Assembly (NCBI GenBank): GCA_020536535.1
Contig: JAHLWZ010000879.1
Location: 1 to 61,934 of the forward strand
DNA from: Pelomyxa schiedti
Taxonomy: Eukaryota > Protista > Evosea
DNA: 61,934 nt
Reading direction: 5' to 3'
The notes below the pieces were generated by a model that saw nothing but the letters and a program-made list of their open reading frames with translations, was not told the origin of the DNA and made no database searches. The position numbers and the translations under genes were made by a program. Every line of letters begins with the position of its first letter. Position 1 is the stretch's first letter. Of this stretch, positions 6,554 to 61,934 are shown piece after piece.

Positions 6554-9500
6554 ATGCAAGGGAGTACAAGGGGAGATGAGCGATTAGTGGAGGTATTACC
6601 GGGTGTGCACAACAGCAGCAGTGCGTGTTGGAGTGTGTCAACGTACCTCCATCACCTGTTCTTGGTATCTTTTTTGTGTTTTTTTTTTTTTATTTCGGTT
6701 TTACTGGCTTTTCTTTTATTGCTTTTGTTGTTTGTTTGTTTGTTTGTTTGTTTGGGCAGTTTTCCCGTTGTGGGTGGTTTTTTGTTTTTGCTAACTGGGT
6801 ATTTAAGGCATATGGGTGTGGTAGATCGGTGGTGGTTGTGTCTGGTGCACTTCGGGTTATGCACGTTTTACACACGCCAGCTATTGTGAGGTGTGTGGCT
6901 GCATCACCAACTGGAGGCAAGGTATGGCTTTTCTTTTAAATGTGCAACACAATTTACATTCGTTCACACCTATTCCTATTCTCCTTTTCATTTCTTTTTG
7001 CAATTGAACTGTTATTTAAGATTGCTGCTGGTGCTGCTAAAAAAGTCTTCATTTTCACACCAAGCCCATTCCAATTTCAGCCTCCTTTAGGGACTGAGGT
7101 ATCATTTTTAACAATTTGCACAAAATCCTTCTGATTTGTTTGAACCTCAGGCAATCCAATGGCAACACTTCCTCACCATCGAAGAGCAATTTGATGTGTA
7201 CACAGTATGCTGGTTCAAACACCCCATTCATGAGGTTTCATCCTCCACTCAAACCTCAACTCCAGGGTCACCACCACCTTCTTCATCTCCTTCTAGTCCA
7301 GAGTCACCACCACCTATCACTTTAACCACCACTACAACAAAAACAACGACTTATTCTCTTGTACTGGGTGGTTCATGGATTTCTCTTCATGAGATTGAAG
7401 AACGGAGACTCAAACGAACTGGAAATCTGTCGAGTGCACATAAAGCCCAGCCCCCTCCAACAGTGTGTCTTATATGTCCCTTCAGTACAATAACGTGCCC
7501 CTTTTCGCAGTCAAGACAAATATGGTGCCGTGAGCTGGCGCGCCCTATCGTTTTTTTATCTTGCTCTCCTGATGGAAGGTAATATTGTTCAGACAGATTT
7601 CACTTAAGATTGGCTTTAGGTATCTTTCATCAATAGGAACATCGGATTCTCTTCTTAAGGTTTGGTATGCCTCCAAAAGTGAGCCCACTTCTATCAGTGA
7701 GGTGTCTAGTCAACCTGCTGCAACTCCATCTACAGAGCCAGAGCCCAGTCATTCTCCCAAAACAATTTTGCAGTTTCAGTACTTAAACCATCCCGCTGTT
7801 GTTGTCCAAGCAACGTGGAGAAGAAGAGTGACAAATGATTGGCGAGCCAATGTATTACTTACCAACAGCAGTGATGGGGTCATAAGATTGTGGTGTGAGC
7901 ACCAGCCGGTTGAGAGTGTTGCATCACCAATTCCACACTATTCACATCCAAGATTTTATCTATGTTGCACTATACCTCTCAAGATTGGTTCACTAGTGGA
8001 CTGGTTGGCACCATCATCGTGGACACGAACCAAGGGTGGAGTAAACGCCTGGGAATGTGTTAGTGCATCCGAGGAGGTGGAGGACATTCAGGATGATAGT
8101 ACCACAAATAGCAGCTTGGACAAGTCTGAGGAAATCACTGAAGAATCGTGTGTTTTTGCCAATCGTTTTTATTTTATTTTATTAAATAGGTTTTTACAGT
8201 GAAGGGAGCTCTCATTTAGCCCAGAAATGTGTTGGAAATCCAGAGGATCGGCCAGCTGCAAGTGGGCCTGGCTAATCAAGTCATTTTTTGCATTAAATTG
8301 TATGTTCAGGAAATTTGCACCCAAAAGCAGTTGATTGGTTTGTCGCCATTCTCGCTGACGGGTCTTCTACCGTGTGGAAATTTCGTTATGTTCCTTACCA
8401 AATGCCAAGAGTCACTGTTTGGGCTCACATGGTTACCTCTGAACTGTGTAACCTATGTTTTAATCCAGTTTTTAGATGCTACAAGGAGCCTCTTTACATG
8501 CTGCCAATATTGTGTCTATTCTTCCTGTGTGCTACGCAACAAGTGAGCCGGCAACTCCATCTTCAAATCCTGTTGGAGTCTGGTTGTATACCCAGAGCAC
8601 CACAGGCACTCTTTCGTGCTGTACACTCAAGCGGCAGGGTCTAACTACCCCTGTGTATGAATTTTGCCCCAACCTTCCTTGTTTAATTCTATCCCAAACA
8701 GAAGGATGTCAATAGAAATTTCCTCTCAACTGTATGGCCACTACAACAACGTAATTGCTGTGTGTGCTCACAAATCCCTTCCGTATGTTGCTTCAGTGGA
8801 TCACAAGCATAATATTGTGTTTTGGAAATGTGCTGATACAGTGGTACTTTCTATTTTTTATTCTACTCTCTTTGGTAATGAATTACCATTCAGGCATTTT
8901 CACAGCCCCCCTTCCTTAAAGCTCTTTCTGTTTTATTTCCTTTCCCAATAGTTTGCTGGTTCCCGACTGGTTTGTTTTATTTTCTGTTGCCGTAAAACTA
9001 AACAAAAACAAACAAAAAGATCCTGTTATTGCTCTGTCAAATGGCTCACTTATATTCATTTATGAACTTTCACAAGAGGTATAAGTTCCACTTTATCTCC
9101 CCTGAAGTCCAAGTAATTTTCCATTTTCAGAATGAGAATGCTTCTCCATCTAGCCTTCCTCCGCACAACATGCTCGGAACCCTGAACCATACAGCTCCTC
9201 TCTCTGGAATTGAGCAACTCATTTCCATTCCAAGTTTAAAGGCCCAAGCTTCCCTAGTTGTTGCTGTTTCGACTGCATCTTCTCAATCAAATGGCACCCA
9301 AGCCTCTATGATTACTGTGTGGGAGGTAAATGTGCATCACGGCGGGGTCCAGCTGCAGTCGAACACTGTATTAACACATACTCTACAACCTGATGAACCT
9401 CAAATCACATGTATAGCACCAGCACATGGCTCCCGTTCCCCTATTTGTAACACATTTTCTGTTGGTTTTATTCTGACAGGTTTCTCTTGATATAAATTCC

Positions 9501-12500
9501 TATTGATTTAATGCTGGATCCCAGGACACCAGAATGGCACTGTAAAAATGTGGGGTCTGAATGAGTCAGCTGATGCACTTACACTGCTCACCACAACGAA
9601 TGTGTGCAATTCTCCTGTTCCCTCTTGTGTCCAAGCACTGAAAGTTTCCTTGTATGGAAAATTTGCTTGTGCCTGCGGACCAGAGTGCAGCATTTGGGAA
9701 CTGGAGGCAGACACTCCACACTGGCACAAAGAAGGAACAATACCTCTTTCCAAGTCTCAACCACATGTTTCCTCTACATCAACACCACAGGGTGTCGTGG
9801 CACCCCGCTCCAGTCTCACTACATCTCTTGCTTTCCCACCCACTTCCACCCCTCAACAACCAAAAGTCCTAATAGATTGGGTACCTCTGGATGATGGTAC
9901 CTCTCTTTTAGCTCTGGTTTGTGGTTCTGCCATTTCAGTGCATGCACTCACGCCATCCACTGGCTTACATGACTTCTCATCCATATGGAAAGAAGTTGAT
10001 ACTACCAAACTATTTACGCTTCCTTGTGGTGCAATAGCGTGGACTTCCGGGGGAAGTCTTATTGCTTCATCAGGACAACGTTTGTTTGTGCTCTCCAAAT
10101 GGTCACCCAGCCTCAAGGCAGCTATCACTCTTCCTTTGCCAACACAAACCACCAACGAAGTCCAATCAGCACCCACAGCAGCATCACCCCCAATAGCAGC
10201 ATCCCCACCTATCCCTTCATCTCCGGCATCAGAAGAACCACCTCAAGTAGCTGGAGAGCCTTCTCTTCTATTTCGGCGCGTCAGAGCACAACACCACGCA
10301 CTCCCACTCTACCACCCCAAAATTCTCATACAGTACATCAACTCTGGTGAGTTGGAACGTGTGCAACTTATTCTGCGATATCTTCTCGACTTTTTGAACT
10401 TGTGCTCGGATTCCAGTAAAATTGCTCTTATGGCTGGAAGACCCGAGTTTCATATTCCTCCTGAGAGTCTTGCACAGTGCAAAAAAAGTGGGATGCAGTT
10501 TTTCTTACCTGCTGGTACTTGTAATACCGCTGTGCCAATAATTAGTGCCAAATCCCCAGTCCCACAAACAAAAAAACCCAGTGGGAGTGAGGATGAAGAA
10601 GAATTCTCCATTACTTATGATGACGACGAAAAAGAGCAGTCATTGTCCACAAGTACATCGAGTACTTCCACTCAATCCACTGTCCCTTCCTATGATCTTG
10701 GACAGACAGAGGCACCGTCGAAAAATGAACGCTGGCTCTCCCAAGAAAACATCCAGAGTTTACGAGAGACTATGAGTACAGTGGCAGTGCCAGATATAGA
10801 CCGTATTGAACAAATGCAACTAATGTCAATTCTTGATACGCTTGGCCAACTTCTAGGGTAGTACCCAACTCTTGCTTTCTGCTGTACTGATACATATTAG
10901 AACACAAGGAGCTCTTGATGCATGTGGTCTGAGGTTCCTTCTTGCCTTCAAAATTTTCAGCCACTTGCGGTACAGTTTGCCCAAGTCCGTACGGCCAACA
11001 TCGTTACGAACTTCAGACATTGCATGGGCGTTACATAGTGAAGCACAAGAAGTGTTACTTCAGGTTATTAATTTTCTTCCTAATTGGTAATTGGTTGTAA
11101 CTGGGACTATAACAGGAAACTCTTCCTCTGGATTCTGATTGGGAAGCAGCAAGATCACTTGGTGTTGGATATTGGCTTACGAACCCCACTCTGGTTTTTA
11201 TTCATTTATTTTCTGTTTTAATTTTAGTTTGTTTCCCTTCAAATTCTAAATTTCTTATCTAGTGCCGAACGTTTGTGGAGAGATTAGCTAAAGCCCATTT
11301 CATGAAAGCCAAGAATCCTGCTGACTCTGCTCTCTTCTACATATCTTTAGGTACGCACCCAAACCTGGCAACCAACTTATTATGACAGGGAGGAAGTCTG
11401 CATTACAAGCACTCTATCGAGCAAATAAAGATTCTCGTTTGGCAACTTTTCTTAGCAATGATTTTAATCTACCCAAATGGAAAACAGCTGCTGCCCAAAA
11501 TGCCTTCAAACTTCAAGTATTGAGCAATTTTTTACTGATTTAAATTAGTAATCTCCTATTAGGGCCAACACCGGTATCATCTTTAACACTCTTTTCCGCA
11601 CTCACTTCACTAGCTATGAACTTGCTGCCGCTTTCTTTGCACTTGGAGGGGGCCTGAAAGATGCTGTAGTTGTGTGCCTCCAAAAATTGGAAGATGTGCA
11701 ACTCGCACTTGTACTGTCAAGGCTTATGGAACAGCCTGCCGGTGCTGGCCCTGTGTACTCGTGGGTTCTTCGAGAGCACTTACTGAAGCTTGCTGCTGAA
11801 AAAGTTTGCTTCTAAGCCACACTTGTGCAATCTAACGAGTTTTAGAGGGACCCATTCTTATCTACTATTGGGCATTGGCTTCTGAAAGAACATGAAAAAG
11901 CTCTTGCAACACTACATCCTTCAGCTTCAATGAGGTGTTCTGATGCCGGGGAACAAGATACACAGTATTTTGATCCATCACTGTTACACTTCTTCCACTA
12001 TTTACGGGATCACACAATGCTCCGTACAGCACCCACTCACATCAAAAGAGACACAGAGCTTCTCAAACGAACACTGGTATCGTATGCCAACTCAGGCTGC
12101 TCTGCTCTAGCCGTTGACTTAATACCAGAGCTGCAGAACGGAGAACAACTATTACGTGAAGAATCCACCAAGAGAATTCAACGAAAGGTAGAACGGGAAA
12201 TTAGACGACGAAATAGGGAGGAGAAGAAGAGATTGATCAAAGAAAAGAGAGAGAAAAAAGTGCAACTGAAAAAGCAACGTGAAGAAGAGTTGAAGAAAGA
12301 GCAAGAAGAGAAAACAAAGAAAGATGGTGGTAGTACAGTTTCAAAACCTGCAACAACAAAAGACGAATCTTCTGATGAGGATGACTATTCGTTCATCCCC
12401 AAACCCAAGCCTCCTCCAAAACCAGTGGAAGATGATGATGATGATGACGATGATTTTTCTTTCATTGTCAAGCGCCCTGCTGCACCTCAAAAGACTGATG

Positions 12501-15500
12501 ATTGGGGTGATTTATTAGGTGGTGGTGGCAATTCCTCAGCAGCATCAACAGAAAAGCCCAAAAAAGAGTGGTTTGAAGAAAGTGATGATGATACTGACAA
12601 GGCTGGATCTGATGAAACTTCCTCCACTCCTAAACTTAGTGAACCTGAGAAAAGAGATTCAACTAGTAACAACCTCACTTCTCACACGGATCCCCTAGAA
12701 TCTGAAGAAGAAAGTGACGAAGATCCAGTGGACCCAGTAACAGATGAAGAAAAGAAAGATGTGGACGATGCCTGTGATGAGTATGAGAAATGCTCGGTTC
12801 TCCCTGCCATGAATACAGAGTTCATTGAAGAAATACGTTTCAAAACAGCACTCAACTTGTCTGTCCAGGTTGGCAGTAACCTCACCATTACTCCCTTCTT
12901 ACAACTCTTTGAACTTTCAATTTCTTAGTCCCTTGTGTCACACACTGCCACAGTTGACGGGTGCACAGAAGCTGCTATGCGTGCTCGCGATTTTACGGGC
13001 ACCTGGGCCACCCAATTAAATGTGGATGTGGACAAACTCCGGAAAGCCGTTTTGAAATTTTGTTCTAGTCACGGATATCTTGGCATTGCTTCTGCTTTGC
13101 AAAAGGCTGGATTTGATACATCAACTACTGCAAGTTCGGACCAGACCGTAGTTATTCATGAGTTACTTGGTCATTTCAAGAGACTTCCACAGCTATTGTT
13201 ATCACATCCACTTGTACATGCTTCTGCAGTTACACTAGGATTTATCGCCCAGTATTTGCAATTTTTTCTTTTTTTTAAATTTCATTCCCTTCCCTTAGTG
13301 AATTGAAGTTGTGTGAGCAGTTGATTCCTCCAATCCCAAACTCTTTGTCCCAGACTGTAAAGAATAAAGTCAAACTTTTCGTATATGTATGTTGTATTTT
13401 CACCACAAAATCACTTTCTTTTTTCACTATATAGGACCAACTTTTCTGTAATCTAGGTAGGCACATTCCTTTCTGCCTGGAGAGACCACAACTATGAAGA
13501 TATGGCTATCCTATTACAAACACAAGACATTGTTGCAAACACACACACCTTGTTTCGGAGGAATATTATGCAGAGTTCTCAATGCCAAATTTCTCCAGTA
13601 CTTCATGAGTACCTCCCAGAAGACACAGAGCATGTAGACGAAGAGGAAATTACCGTCAAGAAAGAAACACCTGAAGTAATCCTTGTTTCAAAGATTTATT
13701 CTAACAGTATCAGGAAAAGAAAATTGATCTCTTTGTGTCTGGTCTGATTTCTCTTTTAGCCATTAAAGCAATGATTTTTCGGATTTCAAACTATTCTGCT
13801 GTTGACCCAATATTCAGTATGAATTTGCCCTATTAATTTTTTTAAAAGAAAAAAATTTTCATTTTCACTTCTGAAAAGTGGTGGAAGAGATTCGAAATTG
13901 GATATCTGGAATGTTACAGTGGTCTCAAGTTCTACAAAGTAGAGTGAGTGAGTTGAACCCACGCACTCCCAGCACACCACTCTTTACTGCTTCGTCTACA
14001 AGCAGCAGCACTAGCAATAGTCCATCCCCATTTTTGAAAGAAGTGAAATTACTGGTGGAGCAGGCGAATTGTGTCAAATCTTCTTCTCAGATGCATGCAT
14101 TCTGGTTATTTTTGAATGCTCAGCTTCCCAGTACCTCGACAGTTGAACAGCTGTTATCTGTGTTACCAGTGCGTAGCCTGCCTCGTTTTTTCCCCAAGTC
14201 ATCACCTTTGTTGTAGAATGAATCAACTTTGCCTGCAATCTCCTTTGAAAAGGAGAATGTCTTTTTCCAGTACAAAGATTTACTCCAATCATTCTGTATA
14301 TCTGTAATTCTTTGATGCCTTCTTTATAAAATTGATTTGGGATAGAATGATCGGAAGTATGTGGCAGCAGCTTCTCGAAGCGGAATTAAAGAAATCAACA
14401 TTGCAGAGTCTCGGCAGGTACAAGATGATGATGACTTCGTCTTGGTATTTATCAATTCCAAGGATTTCTTTATCACCAAATTGTCCTGATTTTGAACAGG
14501 AAGACTCTCTTACATTACAAAATGTTTCTGGAAATCCATCAAAACCCATCACGGGGTTCCCGTTACAAAGTTGTCAAGTGGGCAGCTCAGCCTCAGAACC
14601 AGTTTGGCACATCACTCTAGTTTTCTCCAGTTTTAAAAAACCTAGGTTCTCAGAACAGGCTTTGTTTCAAATTGGCTTGAGGGGCACCCAATTTACCCCT
14701 ATTGTTTGTCAAAGACCCAACAAAATAACACTAAAAACCCGTAGATATGTCTGGTTGTGCTGATGGGAAAATACACCTCTGGCAGTTTCAATGTCCCAAC
14801 AAATTGGGCACCTATGCTGTTGGGGGTACTGCTGAGGCCATACTGCGATGCAGATTTAGCCCTACAGGGCAGAGATTTGCAGGCTGCGATAATGCAGGAA
14901 ACATGGCTTTATGGAGTTTAACTTCAGGCGATATGACACTTGCTCCCTTTTATGTTTGTATCCTTTTTTTTTTGGTTGATGATCCGGCTACCCGTGATTT
15001 TAATGCACTTACAGAGACTCCGGGCTCATAATCGTCAATGTAATGACCTTGCTTTCCTCAACTTTGGCAGTTTCGTGGCTACAGTTGGTGCTAGCAAAGA
15101 TCCCTCGAAGTCCATTTTCCTCACATAAAATTGTATCTCGATATAACTATTCTCATAGTAACATATGCCTCTGGGATACACTTCTTCCACCCCACCAAGC
15201 GTGTGTCATGGCTTCATCTGCCTTGATGACAACAGCCACGAGCTTAGTGTATTCTCCCAGACATCAGATGCTAATCTGTGGTGACAAAAAGGGGCAAACG
15301 TGTATGATCCCATTCTATTAATATCTTCTCGGAACCTCACCGGAAATAGACTCATTCGACATCCGCAAGTTCGGGGTATTGACAACCGGAAAGCCGCATG
15401 CCTCGGCCGTCACTTCCCTCGTTCTTGATCCCTCTGAGAATTACGTTTTGTCAGGATCAACTGATTCCTATATCAAGGTCAATCAATCCACACTTCCAAA

Positions 15501-55071: not shown

Positions 55072-56090
55072 TGCCGCAGATCTTGTTTTTTTTTTTTTTT
55101 TACTTTGTTTGGTCGCCGTTGGATCTTCTTCGAACCGGTGCACCGTTTCGGCAGTTGCATGTTCCTTAATCTTTCTAAGCTATTGTTCTAATATGAGGAT
55201 GATACGGGGGAAACAGCTCAGTACTCAGAGAGCAAGTTCCAAGAATCATCGGGAAACTTCAGAAAGATTGTAACTGATAGTGTTATATCCCTCAAGAGCT
55301 GTGGCAAATGACGAGACCGTAGGTGCTGCGGGAGGGACTTGTGGGATCACAATGCCATCTCTGTTCGACGCCCAGCCACCCATAATTGACACCACAGAGG
55401 ACTCACTGCCATAACGCTTGGGGCCAGAGTCCCAAGAGGCGTCGGGTTTGGTCTCCCAGTACGATTATAAGCTTATTCCACCAACGCTCTGTACAGTTAT
55501 ATATAAAGCAAGAAAAGTTTCACTGTGATATCCTTTTAGACTACTACTGTTGAGCGCAGCCCGTTGGTGACTGCTACTGCGCAGCAACACCCTGCCAACC
55601 TGACAGCAATGTGGAATTCGCCGGGAGCTTGAACTCAAGTCGTCTCCGTTGTGACTGCAGTGCACCCACAGTCCCAATCCGCAAGAAGAGAACTGCCGGC
55701 AGCCACCCAGCACCGCAATTTGGTTCTGTTGAAAAAAGCTCTGCTTGCTGTCAGAGAGGCTTCTCTGGAGATGAGCGATGTCCAAATGAGGAAGTTTCAG
55801 AATTACTAGCTAGTAATTTCTTAGACTGTGCTAATGAGTTGCTGGACTGCAGGGGCACTGGTGAGGAAGCTGACGAGAAAGAATAGGAGGTGCACCACCT
55901 TATCCACCCATTAAACTGAAGCAGAAACTCAATGAGAATCTTTCTGCCCAAACTTTTGATTTTTCCATGATGCTAGATACAGTGACTTTTGAGAAGCAAG
56001 TGTTTTATGGCCAATGGTTGGGAGAATGAACGCAGCACAGCCAGCACCTCAGTGGGTGGTGTGAGGTGACACTTTTTTTGTGTGTGTTGC

Positions 56091-56711
56091 TCATATGCCC
56101 CTCTTGCGTTTGACCTTGACTATCCTCCAGGTAGTTTCGCCACTTGCGAGGCTTGCATTGAACAGAGGAAGCCCGCGGCCGGCCTTGTGCCCCAGGCCCA
56201 TGGACAGTGCGCCGTCCTCGACCTTGTGCTGCCTCGCGAAGAGGTCCTCGAGAAGCCGCCGCGGGGCCACGAATTCCACGACCGTCGTGGGGTTGGTGTC
56301 CACGTGCTTCTTGCCGTTGAGGTATTTCTCGGCGTAGTCGCGCCCCACGGAGCCTTGTATGATCGCCTGGTACGGCTGCGTATTTGGAAGCTGGTTGTTG
56401 TTCACGAGGTACAGCACTTCTTCATCCTTGTTTTATTATGCTTTGTTACTTAAGCAACACAACGACATTGGGTTACTGGCGAAAAACGAGGCGGAAAGGC
56501 GTGTAAAAAAAAATGCAAGTGGGACTCACACCCATTGGACGATAGGCGGTGTCGTGGGTCGGGGGAACGGGAACGTAGCGAGGGTCGGCGTCAAGCCAGA
56601 CCGACGACGCGCCGGGGTGCGAGGTGTCTACGAGGTGGCCCGACGACACCAGGAGTCGCTCGTGAGGAAGCAGCAACTTGCTCTGCCCGGTCACTTTCTT
56701 TGCACTCGTTT
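56091..56711 (-). CDS. Exons 2-3 of a predicted 180-aa protein (YRPMGDEE..TQPYQ..YAEKYL..DTNPTTVVEF); exon 1 predicted at 61424-61400 beyond the inserted elements
   Basis: Exon 56711-56530 and exon 56426-56091 are joined in phase by a GTGAGT..AAG intron; strong GC-rich coding bias; no in-frame ATG in exon 2. Confidence 0.7.
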
Positions 56712-56736
56712 CTGTTGGCCAATAAAAAATTAACTT

Positions 56737-59090
56737 ACACCGGTGTGCAAATGTGATGAGAATGAGGCCTTCATTTCGTCAGGCATGAAGCCCCAAATTT
56801 TGAAAAACCACGGACAAAAAACTGGAGCTGGCAGGAGTTTTTACACTTGGGAGGGGTTGTTTGTTTGCGGTTGGTATTGGGGGAGGAAAAAGGAAAAAAA
56901 CAAAAAAACAAAAAAATCGATGGTTTGGGTTCACTATGCCGGTGTTTCATGTGCTTGAGATGTATGCACTCCACTTATTGCCAGTTTTCCTCTTCATCTC
57001 ATACTTCACAGTTTTGGCCTTTCAATTCCAAGAGGGCTCCGCTGTCGGTATGGCTTCTTCCTTTCTTGTTTATTAATTTAATTTGATTTAGACACCTGAG
57101 TCCGTACTTTCTTATATTTCAGATAAGTAATTATTTAAGTTTGTTTTATTTCGTTTTCGTTCAGTTTTGTTTTTGTTCTTGTTCTCACATCAATACAGTC
57201 ATTGAAGATACTGATGCGGAGACGTGGGTACAGTTGTAGGTTTCCATTTATCTTCTCTGTTTTTATTTTTCGAGTTCTCACATTTTATAACCAGGTGGTA
57301 TTTTAGAGATTCGTTGAGAGGCAGACAGGAACAGGGAGGCAAAAGCAGGCGCACACCCAGAAGAATGTGCGTGCAGCTCCATTCCTCCGGTATTCCTCTT
57401 CTTTTAGTCCCCAATATACTCACCTCCAATCTCTAGGTACTTTCCTGTATTCAACCTACATGCAGTGAGAGTGCCGACATTGGGGCCCTTTTGACTTCCA
57501 GCAGCTCAGCCACTGGTATGTTTCTTATTTCTTATTTTTCTCATTTCACCTTGTACAGTAGGTGCTGGACTTGCCATGGTACATCCCCTCTCCCTTTCCA
57601 TCCTCACCCCACTCAAACATGATAGAATAAGTAGCCCAGACTGACGGAATGATGTGCTGCTCTGCTCCGCTTTTCGTCAGGTTTGCACCCGCATTGTCTC
57701 CCCAGTATTTCCTCACTTCCAATCCCAGGCTTTTTTTTTTTCTTGTTCCCACACTCAACTTGTGCTGAAATGGGTATTCTGCATTTCCGGTGGGTATGTG
57801 ACTCCTTCTTTTTTATTTGCTCCGGTCTCACAGATAATATTTTTTAGGTGGCAACTTACTGGTTTTGGAGCAGAGACCTATCACCAATGTACATCCCCTC
57901 TCCCTTTTATCATACCCCCACTCAACAGGTACCAGGGATTTAAGAAGGACTGACGAATTGAGTGCCTGGGGCTTCCACCTTCCACCTCCCCCTCTCTTGC
58001 CACTCCAATACTACACACTATCTCACATCTGTGCTCCAACACGCCAGAGTCCACTTCTCCCCCCTAATGTGCCCAGGCCTGAAGTCAAAAATCGACTTCA
58101 GGGAAAAAAAATTTTTTTTCCATGATTAAAGCGCTGGGATCCAAATTGGCTCGTGCTCCAAATTGTAATAGTTTTTTCCTCACCGAGAGTCTGCTTTGGA
58201 ATCACAGTGGTGGAGAGCAGGCTTGGACTGTGAGTGTCAGTGGAGGTCCGGCCTAGTGAGGTAACTATTATTGCTGAGTGGGGTTGGGGTGATTATAAAA
58301 AGGAGCCTGTACCTTGGTGGCATCCTCTCATCTCAGCCAGAAATTCCACAACCTAAATAAAGTATTTGAGACTGAAGAAAGAAAAAAAGAAGCAACACAT
58401 ACCAGTGCCGTAAATGCAGAAAGGATGTGGTGTATGCAATGCTGTGGAGACCCTGTGATGTTCTGGTATACACAGGCAGTCTGCCTATCTGGGGTACCTA
58501 TTCTGCCTGAGTGGTGTGATGATGGCGAAGGGATGGAGCATTTACCTCAGCTGGGCCGGCAAGTCCATCACCTAGTAACTGGGAAAAAGAAGAAATAGAT
58601 ACCAGGCCAGCTGGAAATCAAAAGGCCCCAATGCTGCCACTCATGTTCTATGGATTAGGTTGCCTAAAGAGAAGATGAGGGCATGGAGTAACAAGTCATT
58701 GGATAACTTGCTTGATTGCCGGCTCTGCTCCTTGTTCTCTGTCTGCAACATCCACAAAAAGAGCTCTGTTTTAAGGTGGGAACCTTGCATTGGGGAAAAA
58801 AAAAAGAAAAATCATGCCTGAGATAACAAGCACAATCTACAAACACCTCGAGTACTTGGAGCGACACCCATACACATGACACGATGTGACGCCAGCATGG
58901 TTTCACCAACACACGTTTTTTTTTTGTTGTTCTTTTTTCTCTCCCCCAAGTTCCAACCGCAAAATCACGAACCCTGCCAAGCGTAAAGAGCCCTTCAAAC
59001 TCCAATTTTTTGATGGTGGTATCTTCAAAAATCGCCTCCTCAACCTGTGATTTCTTCTGCTCCATTCTCCGTTCATTTGCACACCGGTGT
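56737..59090. mobile_element. Non-autonomous foldback-type DNA element, copy A (~2.35 kb)
   Basis: Ends ACACCGGTGTGCAAATG and CATTTGCACACCGGTGT are perfect inverted repeats; degenerate inverted homology continues inward; collinear with copy B; no transposase-length ORF. Confidence 0.8.
58077..58103. repeat. Central hairpin of copy A (GCCTGAAGTCAA-AAA-TCGACTTCAGGG)
   Basis: 9-bp perfect stem CCTGAAGTC/GACTTCAGG followed by an A-run. Confidence 0.85.
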
Positions 59091-59097
59091 GCAAATG
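59074..59097. repeat. Perfect 24-bp palindrome at the A/B junction (CATTTGCACACCGGTGTGCAAATG)
   Basis: Read directly; the left 12 nt are the reverse complement of the right 12 nt. Confidence 0.95.
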
Positions 59098-61405
59098 TGA
59101 TGAGAATGAGGCCTTCATTTCGTCAGGCATGAAGCCCCAAATTTTGAAAAACCGCGTACAAAAAACTGGAGCGGGCAGGAGTTTTTACACTTGGGAGGGG
59201 TCGTTTGTTTGCGGTTGGCGTTGGGGAGGAAAAAGGAAAAAAAACAAAAAATCTATCGTTTGGGTCCACTATGCCGGTGTTTCAAGTGCTTGAGGATGCA
59301 TGCACTCCCACTTATTGCCAGTTTCCCTCTTGCACAATTTTCAACATCCCTTCTTAACGCCTTTTCACTCTTCATCTCATACTTCACAGTTTCGGCCTCT
59401 CAATCCCAGCAGCGTACCACCGTTTTCAAGTTTCTCCTCCTGAAAGGGCTCCGCCATTGGTATGCTTATTTATTTATTAATGTAATTTACTTTAATTTAA
59501 ACACCTCAGTCAGTATTTTTTTTGTTTCTCACTTTGTCTCCTGCTATTTAAGTTTGTTTTATTTCGTTTTCGTTTTTGTTTAGTTTGGTTTTGTTTTTTA
59601 TTCTTGTTCCCACATCAACACAGGTCCTTGAAGATAATGATGCAGGGGCGCTGGTGCTCTGGTAGGTTTCCATTTATCTTCTCTGTTTTTCTTTTTCGAC
59701 TTCTCACATTTGATAACCAGGTGGTGTTTTAGATATTAGTTGAGAGGCAGACAGGAGCAGGGAGACCTGAAGGCATAAGTGGGCACGCACCCAGAAGAAT
59801 GTGTGTGCAGCTCAGCTCCATTCCAGCGGTATTCCTCTTCTTTGAGTTACCCAATATACTCACCTCCAATCTCTAGATCCTTTCCCGCACTCAGCCTGTA
59901 TGCAGTGGGAGTGCTGGCATCGGAGCCCTTTGACTTCCAGCAGCTTGGCCGCTGGTATGTTTCTTCTTTTCCTCGTTTCACCTTGTCCTACTTGTACCAT
60001 GGTAAATCCCCCTCTCCCTTTTCATCATCACCCCACTGAAACATAATAGGTACCCTGGACTGACGCCGCCCAGGAGAATGGTGTGCAGCTCTGCTCCGCG
60101 TTCCTCAGGTTTTCACTTTCAGTGTCCCCCCAGTATGGCCTCACCTCCACTCCCAGGTTTTTTTTTTCCCGCATTCAAACGTCTTCGATGCATTTCCAGC
60201 ACCTTCCTCACTTGGCCCCTACATGCCAGAGTCCACTTCTCCCCTGATGTGCCCTGGCCTGAAGTCGATTTTCGACTTCAGGCAAAAAAAAAAAAAAAAA
60301 AGCGTCATTAAAGTGCTAAACTCCCCTTCTCCAAATTGGTATTGTTTTTTTCCCACTTTAGAGCAGGATTGGAGTGTGAGATTTGGGGGGCACGGTGTGG
60401 GGAAGTAGAGTGAGAATGTGGGTGGGTGAGTGGAAGTCTGGCCTGGTGTGATGCTCATTCCAGCAGTGGAGGTAACTGTTATTGCTGAGTTGGGCGATTA
60501 GAAAAAGGGAGACAGTACCTTGGTGACATCCTATTCTCAGCCGGAAATCCCACAACCTAAATAAAGTATGTCAGACTGAAGAAAGAAAAAAGAAGCCACA
60601 CATACCAGTGTGACAAGGTGCGGAAATGCAGAAAGGATGTGGAGGAGGAGCCCACATGTTTCCAGGACCTGGCATGCACTGTCTGTATCTAATAGCCCTG
60701 AGTGTGGTATGCCGACACAAAGGGACAGGAACGTTGACCTCAGCTGTCATCTCAGTAAGTCCATCATCTAGTACACAAGGTGAAACTGGGAAAAAGAAGA
60801 AATAAGAAATATACCAGTGGCCACTGGAAATGAATGTGGTCCTCTGGATTAGGTCATCTAAAGGGAAGATGAGCGGCATGAAGTAGAGAGTGATTGGATA
60901 ACTGTGGGCTCAATTGTCAGCTCTGCTCCCTGTTCCTGTCTGTGTCTGCAATGTCCCCAGCACCAGCTGGTTTTCAAATGTAAGAACGCGAAAAAGAAAA
61001 ACAGAGAAGGTACATGCAGTTCCAGCTTGGTCCATAGAAGTCCCACAGCCAACGGTGTCATGTCACCAACTCTCTGTTTTGAGGTGGGAAACTTGGAGAG
61101 GGAAAAAAAAAGAAAAAAAGCATGCCTGAGGTAACATGCACCGTATATAAACACCATCACGTTGTACTTCCGCAACACCCACACACATTGGCACGATGCG
61201 TCACCAGCATGGTGTCACCAACACACCTGTTATTTTTCTTTGTTTTTCTGTTTTCTCTCCCCAAGTTCCAACCGCAAAATTGCGAACCCCACCAAGTGTA
61301 AAGAGCCCCCCAAACTCCGATTTTTTGATGGTGGTATTTTCAAAAAACGCCTCATCAACCTGTCATTTTTAATGCTCAATTCTCCGGTCATTTGCACACC
61401 GGTGT
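59081..61405. mobile_element. Non-autonomous foldback-type DNA element, copy B (~2.32 kb), tandem to copy A
   Basis: Same termini and internal order as copy A, with many substitutions and reciprocal indels; shares the 10-bp core 59081-59090 with copy A. Confidence 0.8.
60257..60283. repeat. Central hairpin of copy B (GCCTGAAGTCGA-TTT-TCGACTTCAGGC)
   Basis: 12-bp perfect stem, 3-nt loop, followed by a long A-run. Confidence 0.9.
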
Positions 61406-61934
61406 AGGGGAAAAAGGGATGCATACACCAACGCGATACAGAAGCGTATTAAGTTAACTGGAGTGCAAGTCAAAGGAGAAAAACAGAATTTGTTAGTGAG
61501 TAAGGCAGTGTGAAGCTGCCCGATTTTGCCGGGAGTTGTTGGGCGGTTGGTGTGGCGGCAGCGCGTTGAATCGGGTCTCACAGCGGCTGCGCGGCCTTGA
61601 ACATAAATGGGTTTGATTGTTCAGTGGCTTGTGACTTTTTATTATCATCACAACCACCAAAAAAATCGATGAGGGGTGGCCATGCCAGTAGTGGACAAGC
61701 AGTACTCTCCCATTTGCTTTTTGTTGTCTTCTTCACCACAACTGTTCTATTTGCTTGTTTATTATTTTATGTATCGGAGTGGTGTTTTTGATTTTATTAT
61801 TTAACAAATTATTTTTAAATAATTATAATGTATGAACTTCTTTATAAATAATTTTAATTACCAGTTCTTTTTTCCCCATTCCACATTACACCAGTATTTA
61901 TGGCAGCTTTCCACCAGTATGTGGCTTCTTCTTT

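Follow-up and report, generated by a model that had tools for sequence, protein, structure and literature searches.

A tandem array of two diverged foldback units joined through a shared palindromic core in Pelomyxa schiedti

Introduction

How could two diverged copies of one element come to lie in direct tandem on a eukaryotic chromosome, joined through a single palindromic core? This question is raised by positions 56737-61405 of contig JAHLWZ010000879.1 of Pelomyxa schiedti (assembly GCA_020536535.1), which was analyzed at its complete length of 61,934 bp, called the window below. An earlier interpretation made from the letters alone, here called the sequence-only reading, explained the array by two independent integrations of a non-autonomous family, resembling att-site recombination by a tyrosine recombinase as in Cryptons. 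The layout is real and more elaborate than first described, and the att-site interpretation is one among several that fit the structure. Our favored explanation, to which we give a rough probability of 0.45, that is, somewhat short of even odds, is that the two units, A and B, are diverged members of a foldback family, the second of which integrated into a palindromic site regenerated by the first; as for the enzyme, we only lean towards a DDE transposase. This foldback-type family is undescribed and belongs to a little-studied lineage, and the genome paper of P. schiedti makes no mention of repeats or transposons (PMC8887013).

Structure of the array

The core ACACCGGTGT has three exact matches in the window, at 56737, 59081 and 61396, and no others (0.05 expected), and none of 100 shuffled windows held three. 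The core starts are spaced by 2344 bp for unit A and 2315 bp for unit B, which occupy 56737-59090 and 59081-61405, respectively, with the cores counted in. The left edge reads AACT-T-ACACCGGTGT-GCAAATG, the middle junction CATTTGC-ACACCGGTGT-GCAAATG and the right edge CATTTGC-ACACCGGTGT-A-GGGG; that is, all four element-side neighbors of the cores are GCAAATG or CATTTGC, and the A/B junction at 59074-59097 is a perfect 24-bp palindrome, CATTTGCACACCGGTGTGCAAATG, without a spacer. The core at the center of this junction is predicted to fold as a DNA hairpin with a 10-bp stem (-10 kcal/mol, z = -4.6). Since a T precedes the leftmost core and an A follows the rightmost one, the empty site would have been TACACCGGTGTA.

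The core positions, unit lengths, arms, palindromic junction and empty site had all been put forward in the sequence-only reading and hold here, and so do the divergence of the two copies and their reciprocal indels: A and B align at 80.8% identity over 2,020 aligned columns, with 639 gap columns, and the large indels lie where they had been placed, with extra sequence in B near 59327-59367 and 60949-61049 and in A near 57818-58017. As to the arm of 7 nt that had been called invariant, the letters were right and the extent was too short, since the alignment of the four heads gives an invariant block of 17 nt, ACACCGGTGTGCAAATG, followed by N4 and an invariant GAGAAT, the remainder being about 70% alike between left and right heads. 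Invariant blocks amid such diverged heads are the pattern of a putative protein-binding terminal repeat. Because the terminal 10 nt are self-complementary, a 10-bp direct repeat flanks any integrated unit regardless of the mechanism that moved it, and each insertion remakes the palindromic target on both sides.

When each unit is compared with itself, its left portion aligns to its right portion read on the opposite strand, so that each unit is a diverged foldback. The array thus consists of four half-units of about 1.15 kb in alternating orientation (A_L>, <A_R, B_L>, <B_R), whose heads join at the cores and whose tails join at short hairpins. The parts are as follows.

56737-56746, no strand: core 1, ACACCGGTGT, the left edge of unit A, with T just before it.
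56747-58076, plus strand: A_L arm, GCAAATG-N4-GAGAAT head followed by a spliced gene-like unit; RNA contig; NCBI gene of 82 aa at 56949-57634.
58077-58103, no strand: tail hairpin of unit A, tail-to-tail, loop AAA.
58104-59080, minus strand: A_R arm, homologous to the L arms reversed; RNA contig; NCBI gene of 83 aa at 58126-58568.
59081-59090, no strand: core 2, common to A and B, the center of the 24-bp palindrome at 59074-59097.
59091-60256, plus strand: B_L arm, transcribed, with five GT-AG introns; annotated as Pelo_13363 (160 aa).
60257-60284, no strand: tail hairpin of unit B, tail-to-tail, 12-bp stem, loop TTT, followed by A18.
60285-61395, minus strand: B_R arm, transcribed on the minus strand, with two introns.
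61396-61405, no strand: core 3, the right edge of unit B, with A just after it.

The terminal inverted repeats comprise 28 nt at 86% identity and reach about 230 nt at about 70%. Left and right arms match at about 70% over the terminal 175-230 nt or so and more closely in patches further inside, namely 57245-57338 with 61016-60926, 57469-57640 with 58642-58488, and 57509-57572 with 60821-60757 (86%). Between units, the first 171 nt of A_L and B_L are 94% identical and the first 173 nt of A_R and B_R are 83% identical. Since like arms are closer than unlike arms, the L/R inversion predates the split between A and B. A_L and B_L agree at every one of their first 73 nt, whereas the whole arms average about 80%. 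A hairpin-telomere or rolling-hairpin concatemer was considered as the origin of the alternating orientation and rejected, because the L-L and R-R similarities far exceed the L-R similarity and an R head meets an L head at the junction.

The loop of the tail hairpin, read from L to R, is TTT in B, in the copy on contig JAHLWZ010000511.1 (at 10554) and in both copies on a 1.1-kb contig (at 424 and 852), which are described below, and AAA only in A, one copy of the five; the difference may thus be a plain substitution.

Other copies of the family

Contigs assembled with k=31 from public P. schiedti DNA runs (X1 and X2) and RNA runs were placed on 56000-61934. In each DNA run a single, unique contig spans the left flank. 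Over the element (5.2 kb), the DNA assemblies break into pieces of 200-700 nt, 266 and 212 contigs with 90-99% identity, some of which carry internal deletions or A/B mosaics. In addition, with the annotated B_L protein as query, an exhaustive HMMER search returned two small paralogues only, on two other contigs. Other copies, whose absence had been named as grounds against the sequence-only reading, are thus present, and its description of the family as multi-copy, dispersed and non-autonomous is supported.

A third unit lies on contig JAHLWZ010000511.1; it has both arms, and these meet at the same tail hairpin. This copy is 93-96% identical to B in the L arm and 86-92% in the R arm, compared with 76-83% between A and B. 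The closeness of B to this copy rather than to A fits the two separate integrations that the sequence-only reading had proposed.

The same comparison bears on another origin, namely that a single unit was duplicated in place, by unequal exchange or template switching between its 10-bp repeats, and that the two copies then diverged and underwent gene conversion from other family members. The 10-bp direct repeats are indeed present at the ends of any single unit, and the 73-nt identical heads of A_L and B_L in arms that average about 80%, as well as the mosaic copies, show conversion between copies. However, B is much nearer to the copy on the other contig than to A. Moreover, 19-25% divergence with many indels would need long residence, yet the three cores and the four 17-nt ends are identical, and 10 bp is scant homology for unequal exchange. 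We regard duplication in place as doubtful, though far from fanciful.

The second paralogue lies on the 1.1-kb contig (1-1134), where two B-like tail segments stand in inverted orientation. This resembles a typical chimera of multiple displacement amplification (MDA) with phi29 polymerase, which suggests that small contigs of this assembly need care. Could the array itself, then, be an artefact, in which A and B from different loci or haplotypes were joined through their shared head in a SPAdes assembly of phi29-amplified single-cell DNA? Seven cells supplied the MDA products for the genome assembly, and RNA was used to scaffold it (PMC8887013). Besides the inverted chimera, JAHLWZ010000511.1 has a scaffold gap and a duplicated arm fragment, and the k=31 contigs are unable to bridge the 73-nt identical heads. 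This shared exact stretch is, however, shorter than the largest assembly k-mers (121-127), and both runs reproduce the sequences of both units. The 19% divergence between A and B also shows that neither is an MDA copy of the other. A false join of this kind is therefore considered highly improbable, and an MDA inverted chimera as the origin of the array was rejected, because the arms are only about 70% alike.

The ends of the contigs carry a further hint. If A and B were the only sequences to share this stretch, the unique left contig should end at 56766; its actual ends are at 56764 (X1) and 56765 (X2); on the right the unique contig starts at 61378, and the flank contigs end 1-2 nt beyond the A/B-sharing prediction. 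The shifted ends imply other sequences with T(T) + core + L head and R head + core + AG, which hints that the same T + core and core + A occur at other loci. If so, the contig ends would speak against random 10-bp duplications and fit either a strict target or palindrome-containing ends with a TA duplication. The terminal 27-mer had no exact match in the viral and metagenome contigs scanned, nor had a conserved 35-nt head pattern in the metagenomes.

On JAHLWZ010000511.1 two further observations were made. The region 11806-13774 is like a long terminal repeat (LTR) retrotransposon, with a gag zinc knuckle CX2CX4HX4C near 13240-13290, and runs to the contig end. At 8806-9392 an R-arm fragment reappears almost unchanged behind a run of N that marks a scaffold gap; this second copy is fused in frame to another first exon (MRRAVGVYVV...), and the annotated 550-aa gene across this gap is probably a scaffolding chimera.

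Formation of the array

We infer the mobility of the units and the order of events as follows. A first unit would integrate and thereby remake the palindromic target on both its sides; a second family member would then integrate into one of the regenerated sites, which would leave one core between the units. The enzyme would preferably be a DDE transposase supplied in trans, which might act in two ways, either by a 10-bp staggered cut at a strict palindromic target, or by TA duplication with CACCGGTG ends followed by a collapse of the junction. This reading is supported by the three identical cores, the 24-bp palindromic junction and the TA-extended outer flanks.

Tandem dimers of transposable elements (TEs) provide the closest model. 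Those of the P element, hobo and R1 contain one target duplication in the junction, and dimers of DNA transposons arise where the target motif, which is palindromic, is matched best, and near transcription starts (McGurk & Barbash; 10.1101/158386). The present array is likewise a direct tandem with one 10-bp repeat in the junction identical to each outer copy, and it lies at most 26 nt from the RNA-supported 5' end of the neighboring gene Pelo_13360. Unlike those dimers, its units are 19% diverged foldbacks without a transposase, and the block they share, 10 bp long or 12 bp with its flanks, is a perfect palindrome that seems to recur at other loci. The independence of A and B as insertions is suggested by the greater similarity of B to the JAHLWZ010000511.1 copy than to A, but the copies are mosaics. 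Since the arrangement core-A-core-B-core is documented for double insertion by DDE elements, att-like geometry is not diagnostic of a tyrosine recombinase. The same arrangement could be obtained in three ways, that is, by a second integration into a regenerated site, by recombination of a circle, or by unequal exchange, and ordinary transposon behavior accounts for the layout as well as att-site recombination does.

Foldback elements come next in likeness. Galileo, a foldback-like member of the P superfamily, makes the palindromic duplication GTANTAC within a 15-bp palindromic target motif, and according to earlier work cited there the target motifs are always palindromes that reach past the duplication (PMC4168063). 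In the Mutator/Foldback group (Drosophila FB; Tm1), the duplication is 9-10 bp (PMC3169594). The present units resemble foldback transposons in the long inverted arms that make up most of the element, in copies that are mostly non-autonomous and in a dynamic arm structure; long terminal inverted repeats as in Mutator/Foldback are present, and a 10-bp duplication would fit the range of Mutator, but duplications of that type (9-11 bp) differ between insertions, and contig ends here suggest the same 10-bp sequence at other loci. They differ in that the arms are spliced, intron-bearing transcription units rather than tandem subrepeats, that the two arms of a unit are only about 70% alike, that the duplication of Galileo is 7-8 bp against 10 bp here, and that neither a Mutator-like element (MULE) nor a THAP transposase was found in the 10 proteins scanned.

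A TA duplication of the Tc1/mariner type had been named in the sequence-only reading as an alternative. If the ends are read as CACCGGTG, TA stands on both outer flanks, and the terminal repeat of about 26 nt and the non-autonomous state recall miniature inverted-repeat transposable elements of this type. TA is confined to the outer flanks, however; between A and B there is none, and the ends overlap by 8 bp, which would need a secondary 10-bp deletion or another origin.

Cryptons encode their own tyrosine recombinase and lack terminal inverted repeats, and their boundary repeats are short and non-palindromic. For recombination of the att type, a circle junction CATTTGCAC-ACCGGT-GTGCAAATG would recombine with the chromosomal site TACACCGGTGTA through a tyrosine recombinase acting in trans, and a second circle would enter one of the two hybrid sites. 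Each integration would need a single step, and core-A-core-B-core would result without a spacer or any further event; this geometry, with an arm-core-arm junction that meets a core-only target, is also that of Cryptons and of the tandem accretion of prokaryotic att elements. The junction is laid out arm-spacer-arm like a minimal recombinase site, the target has 10-12 bp in common with it, and the contig ends suggest equal T + core and core + A at other loci. Against this, the units have the inverted repeats that Cryptons lack, no recombinase gene was found in the 10 scanned proteins or in the relatives found, a fully palindromic core confers no directionality, and neither a circle junction nor an empty site was seen among the contigs placed on 56000-61934. 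The core, although identical at three boundaries here and hinted at elsewhere by the contig ends, is missing in the JAHLWZ010000511.1 copy, and documented DDE behavior yields the same product. The tyrosine-recombinase or Crypton-like mechanism has thus found no specific support, and we consider it decidedly unlikely. Its fuller form is improbable to much the same degree, namely that of a non-autonomous 2.3-kb circle with a 24-bp palindromic junction that recombines with a 12-bp palindromic site and accretes in tandem like prokaryotic integrative elements, and whose convergent spliced arms could give hairpin RNA.

Several points weigh against the double insertion that we favor. Recombinase or transposase domains are absent from the 10 proteins scanned (7 long window open reading frames (ORFs), with the arm protein included), and no autonomous copy is among the relatives found. 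Intact element ends were read at this locus only: in the JAHLWZ010000511.1 copy, which lacks the core, the left head lacks its first 55 nt or so and lies directly against the start of a neighboring gene, and the right head is cut by the LTR retroelement. The right head of that copy also has an A_R-type 35-mer inside a B_R-like arm, which means that copies exchange segments, and with such mosaics the ranking of similarities gives no clean history. A strict target of 10-12 bp would be unusual for a eukaryotic DDE element, while the TA-duplication variant would require the additional 10-bp collapse of the junction. The argument from contig ends is indirect, and MDA chimeras could cause such breaks, the DNA of the seven single cells having been amplified with phi29 before it was sequenced (Illumina and Nanopore) and assembled, with RNA used for scaffolding (PMC8887013).

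Whatever its origin, the stretch defines a repeat family of P. schiedti whose ends are precise, whose junction is palindromic and whose setting beside a host gene is known. Spliced arms with introns more conserved than exons, and a perfect palindromic core that seemingly recurs elsewhere, are unusual for foldback elements. If the core were invariant genome-wide, the family would offer one of few eukaryotic examples of strictly sequence-specific integration, regardless of the enzyme.

Transcription and coding content of the arms

RNA contigs lie on all four arms, and splice joints are resolved in the B arms. The single-cell RNA contigs indicate that both B arms are transcribed convergently and spliced, with GT-AG introns of 43-164 nt: those of B_L are 59460-59623, 59662-59720, 59829-59876, 60002-60049 and 60109-60156 (plus strand, GT..AG), and those of B_R are 60476-60518 and 60557-60605, which read CT..AC on the plus strand and are thus introns of the minus strand. 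Do these transcripts encode proteins? The longest ORF of the RNA-supported B_L transcript has at most 83 codons, the first exons of A_L and B_L differ by frame-shifting indels, the NCBI gene models of the two arms use different frames, and reading frames are not conserved between copies. Introns 2-4 of A_L and B_L are 95, 96 and 89% identical, compared with 71, 87, 79 and 86% for exons 2-5. The arm protein matched no Pfam family, protein-word searches with the head ORFs matched only the window's own protein, exact look-ups of the element ORFs found none on record, and two weak HMMER matches (P0124 and P0125) were dismissed as unrelated. Read in this light, the arms appear to be spliced units that are non-coding or decayed rather than conserved protein genes, and the four small annotated "hypothetical proteins" in them are probably not real proteins. 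An Rfam search of 55500-61934 (E <= 1) found no RNA family, so that the conserved blocks do not belong to known snoRNAs or the like.

Another reading is that the array is not a mobile element at all, but a local cluster of fast-evolving small genes in divergent and convergent pairs; the palindrome would then be a bidirectional promoter element that the paired genes share and that segmental duplication would have spread. Each of the four arms is an annotated gene and has RNA contigs, with the splice joints in the B arms; each core lies between two divergent transcription units, the flanking gene included; in JAHLWZ010000511.1 an arm-like gene stands head-to-head with the L arm across an ordinary spacer without a core; and introns are more conserved than exons. 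However, homology of the flanks ends exactly at the palindrome on both sides, reading frames are not kept between copies, and the conserved neighboring gene appears severed from its start codon. Nor is the core a general promoter motif in the 62-kb contig, a role rejected because CACCGGTG has only two further matches in it, both within ORFs. Such a gene cluster is, in our view, quite improbable, and the insertion of two mobile units is preferred.

Arm introns of 48-59 nt are kept better between copies than the intervening exons (59460-60156 compared with 57048-57740). Among the contigs, further copies have exon 3 swapped outright while intron 2 is kept.

The flanking gene and its surroundings

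The gene to the left of the array and a candidate part of it on the right are located as follows.

56091-56710, minus strand: Pelo_13360, with an exon at 56091-56426, an intron at 56427-56529 and a 5' exon from 56530 to at least 56710, as given by RNA contigs.
61399-61424, minus strand: speculative candidate first exon of Pelo_13360, with ATG at 61424 and the donor G|GTGTGC within core 3.

Pelo_13360 is annotated with 113 aa, while its homologues have 170-190 aa. Their conserved N-terminal block, KLLLPHE...G.L..TH.GSSSIWLEA, which is found in homologues from many eukaryotes and one giant virus, is encoded in frame upstream of the annotated start. This upstream frame (56530-56736, minus strand) adds about 69 codons and is open to 56736, the last base before the core, without an ATG. 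Compared with these homologues, the annotation is about 70 residues too short. Since an ATG is lacking left of the array, either the gene model is missing its 5' part or the gene itself has been truncated. The array may therefore separate Pelo_13360 from its start codon, or may supply one. For the latter, the candidate first exon next to core 3 could be proposed; the RNA contigs showed no support for it, and it is statistically unremarkable, because 91 in-frame combinations of ATG and donor exist. In an unspliced empty site, no in-frame ATG was found under either the core-retained or the TA-only model.

The right flank (61406-61934) was tried as a fifth, diverged family member and rejected, because it has no significant similarity. 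A second version of this flank, about 5% diverged, with several substitutions and a 6-nt insertion after 61424, is present in run X2, and high-depth variant contigs occur in run X1 too, which suggests a diverged allele or a paralogous locus. Far to the left of the array, the ORF at 9548-10861 (plus strand) carries a Rav1p_C domain (RAVE complex) and is part of a long multi-exon gene at about 7.1-15.8 kb.

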